Shown piece after piece: positions 31,830 to 55,423 of a stretch of 64,000 bases of DNA. The DNA is from Felis catus. Its lineage: Eukaryota. Within the stretch, counting starts at the first letter, position 1. Each line of letters begins with the position of its first letter. Below the pieces are notes generated by a model, which saw only the letters and a list, made by a program, of their open reading frames with translations, was not told the DNA's origin and did no database searches. The stretch is from contig NC_058368.1 of NCBI RefSeq assembly GCF_018350175.1, positions 187,240,001 through 187,304,000 of the forward strand, given 5' to 3'. The position numbers were made by a program, and so were the translations under genes.

Positions 31830-32164
31830 TAGTTGNNNNNNNNNNNNNNNNNNNNNNNNNNNNNNNNNNNNNNNNNNNNNNNNNNNNNNNNNNNNNNNNN
31901 NNNNNNNNNNNNNNNNNNNNNNNNNNNNNNNNNNNNNNNNNNNNNNNNNNNNNNNNNNNNNNNNGATAACATAAACAGTTAATTAGCACATAATTTGTAT
32001 ATGTATTATATACTGTATTCTTATAATGAAGTAAGCTAGAGAAAAAAATATTTAAAAAATAGTAAGAAAGAGAAAATACATTTACAGTTCTATGCTGCAT
32101 TGAAAAAATTCCACATATAAGCACACACATGTGGTTCAAAGCCATGTTGTTCAAGGATCAACTG
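31830..32164 (-). mobile_element. Tigger2a-like DNA transposon (spans assembly gap 31836-31964)
   Basis: Right end tgttgttcaaggatcaactg followed by TA; left end agttg before the gap; internal tactgtattcttataatgaagtaagctagagaaaa. Confidence 0.75.
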
Positions 32165-36397: not shown

Positions 36398-36672
36398 ATG
36401 GCACTCTCAGTGGACTCATCCTGGCACCGGTGGCAGTGGCGAGTCAGAGATGGCCTCCCCCAGTCTCCATCAGAAGCCACACCACTATTGTCTGAAGAGA
36501 AGAAGAGGCAAAGCTACAACCTGATACAACAACGGGTCGTCTTCCCCAACAACAGCACGTGCCACCGAGATTGGGCAGAGATCACCAGGAGATACTCCGG
36601 CAACAGAATCTGCACGACCAAATACACCTTTCTCACTTTCCTGCCTCAGAATCTCTTTGAGCAGTTTCATAG
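36398..36672 (+). CDS. ATP10B: ATP10B canonical first coding exon (N-terminal cytosolic tail up to start of TM1); exon probably begins at 36378
   Basis: Translates [19 protein letters not shown]...[25 protein letters not shown], recognisable as the ATP10B N-terminus with the P4-ATPase N-terminal motif. Acceptor ttttag at 36372-36377, ATG at 36398, donor AG|gtacac at 36672/36673; 275 coding nt, phase 2. Confidence 0.96.
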
Positions 36673-37669
36673 GTACACAACCACTTGGCCAAACGATACA
36701 CGCTTTAACCAAGTATTTGCCAGTATTTCTGAAACAAAGATGCTGCCCTCTGGGTTACCTATCCTTTAATATCCAAATGCATGTACCTTAAAAAGACTTG
36801 TCATTCATTTGCTCATTCATTCATTCAATAAATATCAGATTCTACTGTGTTAGGCTATGTGTTCACTGCTGGAGATACATGAGGGGGAAAAGAGAGACAT
36901 AGTCTTGACTATATTTTCTCATGAAAGAGACAGACATTAAATTTAAGAATTATATAAACTGATGTCAAATTAGAATTTAAATAGATACTTCTAAAAAGAG
37001 GTATATGGTGATGTTAGAGTAAATAAGAGGGAGATCTGGGCTAGTTAAGAAAGTCAGGAAAGACTTCCAGGAATAAGTGACAATTGAAATAATCTGAAAG
37101 AAGAGAATGCATTAACTTGGTAAAAACAGAGAGAAGTCAGGAAGGGAGCCAGGAGAATGTCCCTTCCAACAGACCTTCATGTGCAAAGGCACAATGGCAA
37201 AAGGATGCTAGATGCACTTGGAAAAGTTAAAAATGTAAGCCATAATTTCGAGATGATACATGCAAGATCGTATTATAATTATAAAGCAAAATATACACTT
37301 AGATATCATCCTAAATTTTGTAATTATCATTACAAGTTGTCATTTATTGAGAAACTACTATGACTGAGAACGCTCTATTACATATGTAACAAATATAATC
37401 CTATGTAATATTTATAAGAGCCCTTTAAAGTACATAGTACTAGCCCCATTTTACACAAGTTGAAACAAGCTCCAGAAAGTCACACAACTAATAAACAATT
37501 TGAGTTTGAATATAGCTGGATCTGGCTTCAGAGCCCTTACCATAATTCGAGGTCACCCTAAAAGAGAATGTCATTTTAATTGATAAAGGCCAACAATAGG
37601 GAAGAAATAGTGTGGAAAGTATATTTCCTTCTCCATGGTTTTCACTCACACTTTTCTTGTCCCTTCCAG

Positions 37670-37864
37670 ATGGGCTAATCTGTATTTCCTATTCCTGGTG
37701 ATTCTCAACTGGATGCCCTCCATGGAAGTTTTCCACAGAGAAATCACCATGTTACCATTGGCTATTGTGCTGTTCCTCATCATGGTGAAGGATGGCATGG
37801 AAGACTTCAAGAGATATCGTCTTGATAGAAAGATCAACTGCTCCAACATCTGGATATATGAAAG
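37670..37864 (+). CDS. ATP10B: ATP10B canonical second coding exon (TM1-TM2)
   Basis: Pyrimidine tract plus ttccag|A acceptor; encodes [65 protein letters not shown]; donor AAG|gtaaaa; 195 nt, phase 2-2, in frame with the previous exon. Confidence 0.97.
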
Positions 37865-37979
37865 GTAAAAGAAATCACCCTTCTCTTTTCTTGCTTCCAA
37901 ATAGGTTATGAAAACTCTTCAGCATTTTCAAAGGATTGGTCTCTCTTGTCATATTTTATTTTCTTAAGTTCACTTAATT

Positions 37980-38194
37980 CAGTGATTCTCAACCAGAGCA
38001 ATCTTTCCGAGGAGGAAACATTTGACACTTTCTGGAGACATTTTGGTTGCCATATTGAAGAGAATGCCAATGGCAGGTAGTGGATAAAAGCAGAAGGATG
38101 ATGCTAAACATCTTACAATATACAGGACAGCCCCTCCACAACAAAGAATTATCATCCAGCCCAAAATATCACTAGCGCTGAGATTTAGAAACCT
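37980..38194 (+). mobile_element. MER20-like hAT DNA transposon fossil
   Basis: cagtgattctcaacc...ctggagacattttggttg...tgctaaacatcttacaat...caggacagcccc...aaagaattatc...gaaacc. Confidence 0.8.
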
Positions 38195-38489
38195 TAATTT
38201 AGCACATGTAAACACTCAAAATATTAAGCACAAAAAAATGTTATATTATTGACAGTAAGGTTGAAATCTCAAGAATTGGTCTCTAGAATTTACTGGATCA
38301 TCTCAAGAGACCAAATTTAAGAGTGGCTCTTTGGAGAGTGACAGGCGACATCTCTCAAACAAGAAAACATATACCATTTTTAAAGCATCTGAGGCTCTTG
38401 GCTAAAAATTCTTATTTTTAAAACTTAACCAGGTAGGTTTTATGACCAGAGTTGGCACACTTGTTCTCAGCTGCCTGGGTGGAAAAGGA

Positions 38490-38805
38490 AGATCCCTGTG
38501 GGTGACGTCTACATTCCAATAGGTGGAGTCCCAACAAGTAGAAGGAAGTGACCTGACAAGTGCACACCTGTTCTCTGCCAGCTTTTTCCTTGTCATTTCT
38601 CCCCCAGCATTTGTAAACCAGCCTTTTGTTTTTAATTTTCCTTTTGAAAGAAGAGAGAGAAATTTCCAGCAAAGAACGCAAATAAAAGATATCAGGGACG
38701 TGACTCACTGGCAGCTGAACAATGGAACTGATTAGGGGAAAAAACTCTTTTACGGAGAACTCACATGCCATCCTATGAGAATTCAAGAAACAGGATTGAG
38801 CAGAG
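38490..38805 (+). promoter_or_regulatory. Putative internal promoter / 5'UTR of the alternative N-terminal exon
   Basis: Repeat-free stretch with CRE-like TGACGTCT (38503), CCAAT (38516), AP-1 TGACTCA (38701) and E-box CAGCTG (38712); also a strong acceptor-like site ending at 38607. Motif inspection only. Confidence 0.35.
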
Positions 38806-39191
38806 ATGGGAAAGGAAGTCAAAAGAAGGCAGAAAAGGAAAGAAGACAAGAAACGCATAGTAATCTCCAATCTGCCCTTTGAAGTATGGTCCTACAAGGA
38901 GAATCCCAACAGGCATTATTGTGGGAATCAAATTAAGACCAGCAAGTACACCGTGTTGTCCTTCATACCCAAGAACATCTTTGAACAGCTACACCGGTTT
39001 GCCAATCTCTATTTTCTGGGCATTGTGGGTCTGAATTTTGTTCCCGTGGCCAATGCTTTCCAGCCTGAGGTAGGTGTGATACCAATCTGTATCATCCTGG
39101 CGGTCACTGCTATAAAGGATGCTTGGGAAGACCTCCGAAGATGCAAATCTGATAAAGTGATCAATAACCAAGAATGTCTCATCTATAGCAG
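38806..39191 (+). CDS. ATP10B: ATP10B alternative N-terminal coding exon (single exon encoding tail + TM1 + TM2; ATP10A-like)
   Basis: Strong Kozak GAGATGG; in-frame TGA just upstream (38797-38799); 128 open codons + 2 nt (MGKEVKRRQKRK...GNQIKTSKYTVLSFIPKNIFEQLHRFANLYF...LNFVPVANAFQPE...KDAWEDLRR...LIYS-R); donor CAG|gtaaag in phase 2, compatible with the exon at 55219. Confidence 0.88.
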
Positions 39192-41916
39192 GTAAAGCAA
39201 AACTCATTGGGGAAGTCTGGTGGGTCCAGAAGATCTTTCTGTGCCTGCTGCCATTGCTGCTACTTTTTATAGAGGGGATACTGTAGGGAGATAGCATCAT
39301 TTTGTCTCAGTGAAGCTGTTTAATTCTCCAATGTCAGAATTATTACCTAAAACCAAAAACTACATAGAAAAAAGGGTTGAGCCCATGTTTATTAAAATTA
39401 GGAGGTCTTTATTATTTGGTGTTTTCTTTGCTATTTAAAATGTGTTTAGCATTTAAGAATTTTGCATAAATTCTCCTCCATTCCTAGTCCAGTGTATGAG
39501 CACACTGGAGCATATTTAGAGACCGTTGGTGGGAAGAGACATCACTGTTTTTCAGGGGAGCAGTAGAGCATTGTATTAGATGAACTGGAGACACACTGCC
39601 TGGGTCGAATCATTTATTAACTACATGACTTTAGGCAGGTTACCCAACCTCTCTGAGCCTGGTTTTGTCATCTGTAAAACTGAAACCTCTCCTGGGGTGC
39701 TCGTGAGAATTGCATCCTTGGAAGGTGCTTAGCACTGTGCCTGATATATAGTAAATGCTCAATGTGCAAGCTACAATTGCTCTATTTTTATAATGTAAAA
39801 CTCACAGTAGCGCCATCATCAAGGTTTTCTTTATAATTCCTCTCTGACGTCCCAACAAAAGCAAAAACTGCACACCACCCATCTTGCCACATTATTTAAA
39901 ATTATTTTATACATGCTGTCACTTTACAAAGGTTCCATTGAGCATTTGGCAAAACAGGGTTGTTAGGGAAAGGATATGATCTTGGTCAGTCATATCTATA
40001 TTCTTCTCCAGTGAAAGAAAGGAAGATAAGAGTTATTATAGGTCTCAATTTTATGACTGCACATATAGCCAAGATAGAAGCAAGAGAGTCAAGTCTGGGC
40101 TAAGAGAGAGACTTCCATGACTGAGTGCTTTGTGGGCTAGCCTTTGATGATTGAGTCACTAGCAGGTGAGGGTTTGACTTCTTGGCAGATAAGGAAAATG
40201 TCCATCTCTCTCTCGACGAGCACCATTCCTGTCTGACTTTTTCCCTCTGACTTTATCAGCCCTAATTGGCAGAAATTCTCCAGTCGCTCTGGTCCCTCTT
40301 AAGATGAAAGGGGCTGGCTTCAGGGTGTGCACTGTAGCCATTTAGGGGCTTCTTTCTAAAGAGGGGTTCTCTTCCCCAGGGGAATGGCAGGTAACCGACT
40401 TGTAGCTGGCTGATGAGAGGATTTAATGGGAGACTATCGAATGCAAGGGACTCATTTGTCTTCAGGGCACCTCTACGAAAATCTTCATGTCTCCCCTCAG
40501 CATCAGATGCGCTTCTGGCCTCTTTGCTGGCAGGGCCACAACTGCACGTCTAAAAAAGTTAATCTGAAGGGTGTGTGTGTTTTCTAATTGTCTTGAATGT
40601 TGTTAGCACACTGAACATCTAGAGAAGGAATATAATTGGCAGGCTGCCTTTTTTCAAAGAGACTGTCACCAACCCACACCTTCACTTTTTGTTTGCTGCC
40701 TTTCTTTTTCCTTAGTTTTTTTTTTTTTTTTTTCTCAGAGAAGATACACAGTGGTGAGCCAGGAAGCTGATTCCTTAGGGAAGAATGAGTGTGGACCTCA
40801 ATTAGCCTGATCCTATTCTCCCTGCTCTGCCAGAAATCCTCTGCCCTAAGCCTCCTAGAATCACAGGCCTGTTCTTGGGGATAATCTCAGTGTTTATCAG
40901 ACCTTAGACTGACCTGTGCTGAGAACTGGTTTGATGTATGCCAGGCTGTTGTTCTGTTCTCAAAATAGCTTCCAGGAAACAGTGAAAAACCAAGGTGGCA
41001 GCAATCCTAGCAAAAAGAAGCCTTAGTTCATAGGTTCACTGGCAGGGAGGGACATAAGAGGTTTTATAATAGCAATATTTCCTGAAGTGTATTCAGTGGA
41101 ATAATAATGACTAAGAGGTGGTCTCCGAAAAAAAAGACACTCATGATCAAAAAATTATACATTAGCCCTCCTAACCCATGTTCCATGGGGGAACTAAGAT
41201 ACGCAGTAAAGATATCTGTCCATCCTTAATTCAGTGTTGTTCCAAACTTACTAAACCTTGGAAATTTGGGGAATTTTACTTTCTTCAGTATAGCAAAATA
41301 ATTGACTAGAGGGTCAGGCAGGTAATTGAATGAAATAAACTAAATACAAAGAGGGGAGCAATGTTGTCTGTGTGCTGATAAATGGGGACGGATACTCAGC
41401 ATCAGTGTTAGATTAAGACAGGGAACGGTAGGCATTGTAGCAAATAAGGGGACCCAGGCCCTCACATCAGAAGGCAGAGCTAGCCACCATGTGCAAATAT
41501 AGACCTAGTGTTGCCACATTGTCTGAATTTTGTTAAAGGAGCTAGAAGTTCATGTTTTTATTTGAAATAACCTGGCATTTAAGAGAAATAACCTAATATA
41601 TTTTTTTCAATTATTTCACACCTATTTTGTTTGACCTAAAGTTCTTATTTTGCCTGTGAGCCCCAAATTTGCAGACTTTGCTTTATAATCAAGTCCTAGG
41701 AATCTGGATCTCTGCAAAAGAATGATTAGATTCTTCTTTTGAGATTCATCTTCAGTGAGGGAACCACTTAACCTCTTAGGGCAGAGATGGGGTATGACTT
41801 TGAAGTAAGAATGCAGGCCTCATACTCAGAAGGCCTAAACTTTAAGCCCAGACCTGTGACTGACTACTAACAACAGCTTAGAAAGTCATTTAAATCCTGC
41901 ATCTCAGTTTCCACTT

Positions 41917-48654: not shown

Positions 48655-50500
48655 ATTTGTTTTATTTATTAAGACTTTATTTTTTTAGAGTAGTCTACTG
48701 TTGGTTCACAGCAAAATTAGGGGAAGGTACAGAGATTTCCCATTTACCCCTAGCCCCACTCATACATAGCCTTCCTCATTATCAACATCCCCCACCAGAG
48801 TGCTACATTTGTCACAACACATCATAATCACCCAAGATCTATAGTTTATGGCTCACTCTTGGTATTATATATTCTGTGCATTTGGACAAATGTATAGTAA
48901 CATGTATCCATCATTATAGTATCACACAGAATAGTTTTAATGTCTTAAAAATCCTCTGTGTTCTGCCTTTACACCTTCTCTGTCTCACCCCCACAACCCC
49001 TGGCGACCCCAAATGTTTTTATGCCTCCGTAGTTTTGCCTTTTCCACAATGTCATATTGTTGGAATCAAGCAGTATGTAGCCTTTTCTGATTGGCTTCTT
49101 TCACTTACTAACATGCATTTAAATTTCCTCCCTGTCTTTTTGTGGCTTGATATCTCACTTCTTTTTAGCATTGATTAATATTTCATTGTTTGGATATACC
49201 AGTTTGTCTATTCACCTACTGAAGGTCATCTTTCTTGCTTCCAAATTTTGGCAATGGTGAATAAAGCTTCTATAAATACCCACGTGAAGGTTTCTGTGTG
49301 GAAATAAGTTTTTTAACTCCTTTGGGTAAATACCAAGGAGCATGATTGCTGGACCATGTGGACAAAGTATATTTAGTTTTGTAAGAAACTGTTGAACTTT
49401 CTTCCAAAGTGGCTATCCCATCTTTCATTCCCACCAGCAGTGAATAAGGGTCCTTCTTGCTCCACATCCTTGCCAGAATTCAATGTTGTCAGTGTTCTGG
49501 ATTTGGGCTGTTCTAATAAGAGTATGGTGATATCTCATTTTAATGTGCATTTCTCTGATGGCATATGGATCTTTTCATATGTTTATTTGCCATCTGTATA
49601 TATATATTTGGTTAGGTGTCTGTTCAGCTCTTTTCTCATTTTTCAGTTGAGCTGTTTGTTTTCTTATTGTTGAGTTTTAAGTTATTTGTATATTTTGAAT
49701 TGCAGTCCCTTATCAGATGCGTCTTCTGTAAAATACATATTTTCTCCCAGTCTGTGGTTGTGTTCTCATTCTTTTTACCATGTCTTTTGCAGAGCAGAAG
49801 GTTTTAATTTTAATGAAGTCCAGTCTATCAATTATTTCTGTCATGGATAGCACCTTTGGTGTTGTATCTAAAAAGTCATCACCATAGACAAGGTCATCTG
49901 GATTTTCTCCTCTGTTAACTTTTAAAACTCTTATAGTTTTTAATTTTTCAGTTAGGTCTATGATTCATTTTGAGTTAATTTGGAAGATGGGTGTAAGTTC
50001 TGTGTCTAAATTTCTTTGTGGACATCCACTTCTAGAACCATTTGTTGAAAAACTATCTTTACTATATTGCCTTTGGTCTTTTGTCAGAGATTAGTTGAAT
50101 TTCTGTTATAAATAGATGAATAAATTGAGGGTCAATTTATAAATAGATGNNNNNNNNNNNNNNNNNNNNNNNNNNNNNNNNNNNNNNNNNNNNNNNNNNN
50201 NNNNNNNNNNNNNNNNNNNNNNNNNNNNNNNNNNNNNNNNNNNNNNNNNNNNNNNNNNNNNNNNNNNNNNNNNNNNNNNNNNNNNNNNNNNNNNNNNNNN
50301 NNNNNNNNNNNTGGCCATTGATCTGTTTATCTGTTCTTTCACCAGTACCACACTGTCTTGATTACTGTAGCTTGAAGTCTTGAAATGAGGTAGTAATCGT
50401 CCTCCAGTTTTGTTCTTCTCCTTCAATATTTTATCGGCTGTTCTGGGTCTTTTGCCTCTTTTATATAAACCTTAGAATCCAGTTGTCAACATCTGCAAAT
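48655..50500 (-). mobile_element. Old L1M (3'UTR and ORF2 3' part), spans assembly gap 50150-50311
   Basis: Antisense L1 motifs cattcccaccagcagtg, ttttaattttaatgaagtcca, ccagtaccacactgtcttgattactgtagct. Confidence 0.82.
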
Positions 50501-55218: not shown

Positions 55219-55423
55219 AAAACAGCAGAGCTACGTGAAGAAGTGCTGGAAGGATGTGCGTGTGGGCGACTTCATCCAAATGCAATGCAATGAGATCATC
55301 CCAGCAGACATACTCCTGCTCTTCTCTTCAGACCCGAATGGGATCTGCCACCTGGAAACTGCCAACCTGGATGGAGAGACAAACCTCAAACAAAGGCGTG
55401 TTGTGAAGGGCTTCTCACAGCAG
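55219..55423 (+). CDS. ATP10B: ATP10B shared coding exon, actuator domain with DGET motif
   Basis: Encodes [68 protein letters not shown]; P4-ATPase LDGETNLK signature; acceptor ...cccaag|A, donor CAG|gtaagg; 205 nt, phase 2-0. Confidence 0.96.

Follow-up and report, generated by a model that had tools for sequence, protein, structure and literature searches.

The 64,000-nucleotide stretch of the Felis catus genome analyzed here (RefSeq assembly GCF_018350175.1, contig NC_058368.1, positions 187,240,001 to 187,304,000 of the forward strand; hereafter the window, position 1 being its first letter) holds the 5' part of the flippase gene ATP10B on the + strand. This part of the gene contains two alternative “heads”, where each head consists of the cytosolic N-terminus, the first transmembrane helix (TM1), the exoplasmic loop and the second transmembrane helix (TM2). 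The canonical head is encoded by two exons, while the alternative head is encoded by a single exon carrying its own ATG, a polybasic cytosolic N-terminus, a complete PhoLip_ATPase_N domain, and a TM1, loop and TM2 of the type found in ATP10A (Table 1). We consider it very probable that the two heads are spliced alternatively to the exon at 55219 and that one gene in this way produces two full-length flippases around one catalytic core.

Table 1 Features of the ATP10B head region in the window (a slash marks the end of an exon; MXE is the source's own label).
Feature	Coordinates	Strand	Remarks
Canonical first coding exon of ATP10B	36398..36673	+	ATG start; cytosolic N-terminus and first part of PhoLip_ATPase_N; ends CAT AG/gt, phase 2
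Dileucine-type sorting motif E-A-T-P-L-L	36473..36490	+	Canonical head only; read from sequence
Canonical exon 2	37670..37864	+	TM1, exoplasmic loop and TM2, ATP10D-type; ends GAAAG/gtaaaa
In-frame TGA	38797..38799	+	9 nt before the alternative ATG; closes the frame in Felis catus
Alternative first coding exon	38806..39191	+	Single exon; 129-codon open reading frame; ends AGCAG/gtaaag
Part of alternative exon equivalent to human 'MXE candidate in intronic region'	38943..39191	+	249 nt; coordinates derived from sequence
Shared next coding exon	55219..55423	+	Start of actuator domain; joined by either head

A first-pass annotation, made from the letters of the window alone, had pointed to an intact open reading frame (ORF) 942 nt past the canonical TM1-TM2 exon that re-encodes the same part of the protein, had noted that both heads end in the same phase and fit the exon at 55219, and had read the ORF as an alternative start because of its strong-Kozak ATG (G at -3, G at +4) and the stop codon closely upstream; all of this is borne out in the sequence. 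Both heads stop two bases into an Arg codon, the A at 55219 completes either of them, and the acceptor at this position is preceded by a pyrimidine-rich tract. When the window was searched by tblastn, with positions 37707-37768 masked and each exon taken singly instead of in a joined spliced model, canonical exon 1 showed 74% identity to camel ATP10B and the alternative exon 79% identity to rhinoceros ATP10B isoform X2. The exon at 55219 was 84% identical to residues 127-201 of the same rhinoceros protein, and it also has a weak match to Pfam PF00122. The alternative exon belongs to ATP10B, since the flanking exons are orthologous to that gene and proteins with the alternative head carry ATP10B bodies. 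No third head or further coding exon was found between 39191 and 55219 by tblastn with orthologues.

The alternative head aligns without gaps to canonical exon 2 with 26/65 identities (BLASTP, E 2e-17) and to canonical exon 1 with 26/61. The earlier count of 43/92 identities over alternative residues Y38-R129 is recovered from the two BLASTP alignments as 17/27 plus 26/65. Within one species the two heads are approximately 40-49% identical, and by these scores their likeness is far beyond chance. The alternative head also reaches 80 bits (E 1.1e-22, residues 31-87) against PhoLip_ATPase_N (PF16209), for which the Pfam gathering cut-off is 29 bits. Canonical exon 1 reaches 49.7 bits over residues 62-92, while canonical exon 2 alone reaches 24.8 bits, a low score because the intron splits the domain. 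TM1, loop and TM2 of solved flippases align gaplessly with the alternative head, placing it in this module; the structure matches comprise 9dzv, Dnf1 (7drx), ATP8B1 (8ox4), ATP11C, ATP8A1 and Drs2, with E values from 4e-22 to 7e-13. The conserved motifs A-N-x-Y-F, L-N-x-x-P and K-D-x-x-E-D are all retained.

The existence of the exon is already known, and what we add is its age, its constraint and the relationship of the head types. The first-pass annotation had pointed to a human ATP10B isoform with a similar alternative N-terminus, so that the exon might be catalogued, and this proved right. In a profile search of 1.8 billion representatives the 200-residue ORF P0001 showed 82% identity to the window ORF over all 129 residues, and its 90% cluster includes human NP_001353587.1, which is ATP10B isoform 5 and UniProt O94823 isoform C. 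Furthermore, Hatje et al. 2017 list ATP10B cluster 2328 as a validated mutually exclusive exon, in which a 195-nt canonical exon is paired with a 249-nt candidate (PMC5740500); according to Dataset EV4 the candidate covers 249 nt or 83 residues and starts with K-Y-T-V-L-S-F (PMC5740500). Inclusion in human tissues is significantly differential, the candidate being highest in oesophagus and the canonical exon in colon (PMC5740500). The human exon is orthologous to that of the window, with the same end phase and the same next exon, but the product of human isoform 5 is truncated (501 residues) and cluster 2328 models an internal 249-nt cassette, whereas the exon in the window reads as a first exon.

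The proposal that the alternative head is mutually exclusive with the canonical two-exon head and uses the same downstream exon is supported by cluster 2328 (PMC5740500), by the RefSeq isoform pairs described below, and by P0001 and P0164, transcript-derived ORFs from assembled runs in which the alternative head reads directly into the sequence of the exon at 55219. The pair shows homology, vicinity and the same end phase, and exclusivity is reported for human (PMC5740500); joint inclusion through an internal AG would keep the frame, and several ab initio models fuse both heads. The same report states that the ATP10B cluster is absent from marsupials (PMC5740500). This statement is outdated, as it is contradicted by RefSeq isoform pairs in wallaby and by models in opossum and bilby. 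Both heads are likewise present in birds, reptiles, amphibians, lungfish, bichir and gar.

Under the model of cluster 2328, splicing would join canonical exon 1 to the AG at 38941-38942, and canonical exon 2 would give way to the 249-nt piece that starts directly after this AG. The phase fits, and the cassette was counted as validated by splice-junction reads (PMC5740500). The validation criterion was junction reads to up- or downstream regions (PMC5740500), however, and it could be satisfied by reads to the downstream exon alone, which would fit a first exon equally well. Such splicing would put the K-Y-T...F-E-Q-x-H segment into the product twice, once from exon 1 and once from the alternative exon, and the AG is a poor acceptor that lacks a pyrimidine tract and follows a purine-rich stretch. 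The sequence before the alternative ATG is likewise purine-rich without a pyrimidine tract, and neither site looks like a 3' splice site. Moreover, conservation across mammals extends to the 46 residues upstream of the AG, ATG and polybasic run included, and RefSeq, UniProt and assembled rodent complementary DNAs (cDNAs) all begin at the alternative ATG. We therefore give an internal cassette little chance. Read as a first coding exon, the element has its own start codon, a stop that closes the frame upstream and a good gtaaag donor behind, and it is preceded by no acceptor that could be used.

We thus favor a mechanism in which transcripts would take either the upstream two-exon head or the downstream single-exon head, the latter probably from a promoter of its own, and in which either head would then join the exon at 55219 and so gain the shared catalytic core. 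The ORF at 38523-38735, upstream of the alternative ATG, ends in W-Q-L-N-N-G-T, and this string recurs in the N-terminal read-through of P0181 from another mammal; therefore, approximately 100-280 nt of sequence upstream of the ATG are conserved as DNA, which is consistent with a 5' untranslated region or a promoter. No CpG island was found around the canonical or the alternative start. An AP-1-like heptamer at 38701 was considered as a promoter cue and rejected, as the window contains 11 matches to the motif against 13 expected, i.e. no excess over chance. Sauropsids, monotremes and marsupials have an alternative head whose coding N-terminus is longer.

A second possibility is that the exon is transcribed but yields truncated or non-productive products, as a regulatory decoy or a by-product of an intragenic promoter, without giving rise to a second flippase. 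The curated human protein with the alternative head is indeed only 501 residues long, and no functional study of this head was found in the literature. In opposition to this, a search with the frog ATP10B head found the alternative head on a full-length ATP10B body of approximately 1250-1500 residues in many vertebrate lineages. Among placentals these are rhinoceros (X2), deer mouse (X2) and tenrec, and the other lineages comprise marsupials, platypus, many birds, turtles, lizards, snakes, frogs, salamanders, caecilians, lungfish, bichir, gar and bowfin. RefSeq predicts a full-length “isoform X2” with the alternative head in mammals, birds, reptiles, amphibians, lungfish, bichir and gar, and in many birds, frogs and fish the protein named plainly ATP10B, with no isoform label, is the one that has it. 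The bodies of the alternative-head proteins are 75-100% identical to ATP10B as compared to 47-57% to ATP10A. In the RefSeq isoform pairs of wallaby, axolotl, lungfish and bichir the head alone differs, with 1273-1334 identical downstream residues. Rodent run assemblies contain ORFs of 1439-1445 residues with the alternative head on Logan contigs of approximately 5-7 kilobases (P0401, P0404, P0408), and contigs of this length must be cDNA because of the size of the gene. Finally, the alternative head has been better conserved than the canonical one for more than 400 million years, including TM1-TM2 residues that matter only in a working pump. An exon without a functional product is in our judgement improbable.

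Judging by this species distribution, the two-head architecture is at least as old as the bony vertebrates, i.e. more than 400 million years. Ab initio models in which both heads are fused show the canonical exons before the alternative one; these models come from cobra, two lizards, two birds, arowana, camel and field mouse. Tandem two-head models of this kind are P0002 (cobra), P0276 and P0456 (lizards), P0277 and P0278 (birds), P0280 (arowana), P0297 (camel), P0306 (Chinese hamster) and P0400 (field mouse); they would add two membrane helices to the protein and in all likelihood reflect errors of annotation, but they serve as evidence for the exon order.

The two heads had been called paralogous in the first-pass annotation, but a simple duplication within ATP10B did not survive the phylogenetic analysis. 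A maximum-likelihood tree was made from 89 gapless heads of 100 residues, and a tree of 57 rows agrees with it. In place of the canonical head of the window, those of camel, field mouse and wallaby were used, and P0001, P0151, P0152, P0158 and P0164, which look human or ape, were left out of the trees as well. One clade unites ATP10A, the alternative heads of ATP10B and a group of fish heads (support 99/97), and another unites ATP10D with the canonical heads of ATP10B (100/94). The alternative ATP10B heads form a clade of their own beside ATP10A (100/93), and invertebrate heads, amphioxus included, fall outside both clades. Forcing all ATP10B heads into one clade, a group that was named after the tree had been seen, costs 50 log-likelihood units and is rejected by the approximately unbiased (AU) test (p-AU 0.0025). 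The heads therefore represent two ancient types and did not arise by duplication within the gene. Among ATP10A, ATP10B and ATP10D the catalytic bodies are about equally distant from each other, at approximately 47-57% identity.

The group of fish heads bears on the origin of this arrangement. Two teleost ab initio models from Prochilodus and Electrophorus, P0279 (residues 62-162 and 197-297) and P0282 (residues 68-168 and 192-292), have a first head of the ATP10D type and a second of the ATP10A type, and both bodies match ATP10D best. Approximately 40 short single-exon ORFs share the clade of these second heads, and the named ones are from teleosts. Teleost ATP10D may thus also have an alternative ATP10A-type head. 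We lean towards a common ATP10 ancestor that was two-headed before ATP10A, ATP10B and ATP10D split; ATP10A would then have kept one head and tetrapod ATP10D the other, with both kept by ATP10B and apparently by teleost ATP10D. The sturgeon ATP10D model P0009, used here solely as query for ATP10D-type heads, repeats its head-to-actuator segment and a C-terminal segment and carries the NCBI flag UNVERIFIED_CONTAM; it is probably an artefact of assembly or modelling.

Conservation was compared at the protein level in seven lineages having both heads. In 21 of the 21 lineage pairs the alternative head was the better conserved of the two, with a mean identity of 73% versus 60%, and the comparison shows the alternative head to be under the stronger apparent constraint. 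The alternative ORF is exactly 129 codons long in more than 20 distinct mammalian sequences. The alternative head of Felis catus has Ala at residue 82 (39049-39051), where 94% of ATP10A-type heads have Val, and Cys at residue 113 (39142-39144), a site at which nearly all other alternative ATP10B heads shown carry Tyr; in the tree its branch does not exceed those of tenrec or deer mouse in length. The notion of a decaying relic, left when the head was recently duplicated in tandem within ATP10B and with an ORF intact by chance, draws on nothing more than the position 942 nt downstream of a similar exon, and it is to all intents refuted by the low identity between the heads of one species, the tree, the AU test, the invariant ORF length in many mammals and the orthologues down to ray-finned fish.

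The two isoforms may differ in their location in the cell. In human ATP10B the sequence ETTPLL is needed for localization to late endosomes, and the protein moves to the plasma membrane when it lacks the dileucine or receives the N-terminus of ATP10D (PMC7530900). The canonical head of the window has the corresponding motif (Table 1), while a reading of the cytosolic part of the alternative head found no [DE]xxxL[LI]. The alternative isoform would probably reside in the plasma membrane and not in late endosomes or lysosomes, because it is without a dileucine signal. The plasma membrane is, by this analogy, its likely location. It has also been reported that ATP10B with the cytosolic N-terminus of ATP10A and the canonical TM1-TM2 stayed in the endoplasmic reticulum, whereas the N-terminus of ATP10D was tolerated (PMC7530900, Figure 1 text). 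The cytosolic N-terminus and TM1-TM2 may need to be of matching type, as they are in the natural alternative head.

TM1 and TM2 contribute to both lipid sites and change position in the course of transport (PMC12424579). The first-pass annotation had suggested that the two heads provide different entry gates. The Asn at the gate position of Dnf1 G230 and Drs2 Q237 is identical in both heads, but its neighbor, the loop and TM2 differ. In the numbering of the alternative head, and with the ATP10A-type residue given first, the type-specific sites are F78 versus W next to the gate Asn, N83 versus E and P87 versus K in the loop, T101 versus I in TM2, and in addition C124 versus T. Canonical ATP10B moves both phosphatidylcholine (PC) and glucosylceramide (GlcCer) (PMC7244618), and according to a recent review it is still unclear which gate features separate ATP10D, which moves GlcCer only, from the PC-preferring ATP10A (PMC12424579). 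The head is at most one determinant of lipid choice. The alternative isoform would offer a different TM1-loop-TM2 surface to the lipid, perhaps in squamous epithelia. More speculatively, the canonical head would give a late-endosomal/lysosomal enzyme, while the alternative head, with its ATP10A-like TM1-loop-TM2, would give an enzyme of the plasma membrane that acts in other tissues and whose PC/GlcCer preference is shifted. A difference in targeting or substrate choice between the two isoforms is an inference from these analogies. The fuller scenario, in which the vertebrate ATP10 ancestor had a two-exon head of the ATP10D type and behind it a single-exon head of the ATP10A type, and in which the heads of ATP10B act as a joint switch of location and substrate, is a tentative one that we find rather doubtful as a whole.

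Several observations weigh against two flippases of different properties, or against parts of this proposal. The full-length models are mostly automatic predictions, and the only curated human product with the alternative head is the short one of 501 residues. The residues A82 and C113 in the copy of the window are unusual at sites that are otherwise conserved. The shared gate Asn speaks against a different gate, and since canonical ATP10B moves both lipids with an ATP10D-type head, the head alone does not set the specificity. When ATP10D heads and fish second heads were held as one clade the AU test gave p 0.094 and did not reject it; the second head of teleost ATP10D is therefore only suggestive support for the two-headed ancestor. 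Among the 20 sequencing runs that hold the stretch 38600-39300 only X3 is recorded as RNA, the types of the others being guessed or unknown, so that the runs give a hint only. One of the 20 is recorded as a gut metatranscriptome, with 1421 million letters. Runs of 124-764 million letters, whose type was guessed to be RNA, hold 0.84-0.96 of the sampled words from 38600-39300, again a hint only, and the share of 0.84 seen in several runs equals the fraction of this stretch that lies at or before the donor.

The arrangement in ATP10B can be compared with known systems. The head of ATP10A, a plasma-membrane flippase that prefers PC, groups with the alternative head of the window and shares with it F next to the gate Asn, Q-P in the loop and T in TM2; heads of the ATP10A type are also found as single ORFs that stop at the same ...S-R boundary (P0010). 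The difference is that the alternative head lies in the ATP10B gene and on an ATP10B body. The C-terminal variants a, b and c of ATP11C provide a parallel to the head swap, as an alternative terminal segment with or without a sorting motif changes localization (PMC11775268; PMC7530900), but ATP11C swaps only a cytosolic tail, whereas the swapped unit in ATP10B also contains two transmembrane helices of the lipid pathway. The mutually exclusive exons of channel genes (CACNA1C, SCN genes; PMC5740500) resemble those of ATP10B in that homologous exons re-encode a membrane segment in a tissue-biased manner. However, the channel exons are internal cassettes of equal length, while the ATP10B exon is a first coding exon with its own start that replaces two exons.

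ATP10B has been studied in connection with Parkinson's disease risk and lysosomal glucosylceramide export (PMC7244618), and all functional and disease work that we found concerns the canonical isoform of 1461 residues (including PMC7244618 and the study of N-terminal sorting, PMC7530900). In the second isoform, residues 1-157 would be replaced by a head that predates the tetrapods and is more strongly conserved than its canonical counterpart. One ATP10B product would then be untouched by variants in the canonical head, and the statement that ATP10B is lysosomal may apply to one isoform only. The two isoforms would also constitute a natural TM1-TM2 swap, an ATP10D-type versus an ATP10A-type head on one catalytic core, and their comparison would directly probe the contribution of TM1-TM2 to the lipid difference between ATP10D and ATP10A (PMC12424579). 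The exon itself is no discovery; its age, its constraint and the ATP10A-type/ATP10D-type relationship are the additions that deserve the attention of specialists. As a minor observation, the window contains two runs of N, at 31836-31964 (129 bases) and at 50150-50311 (162 bases).

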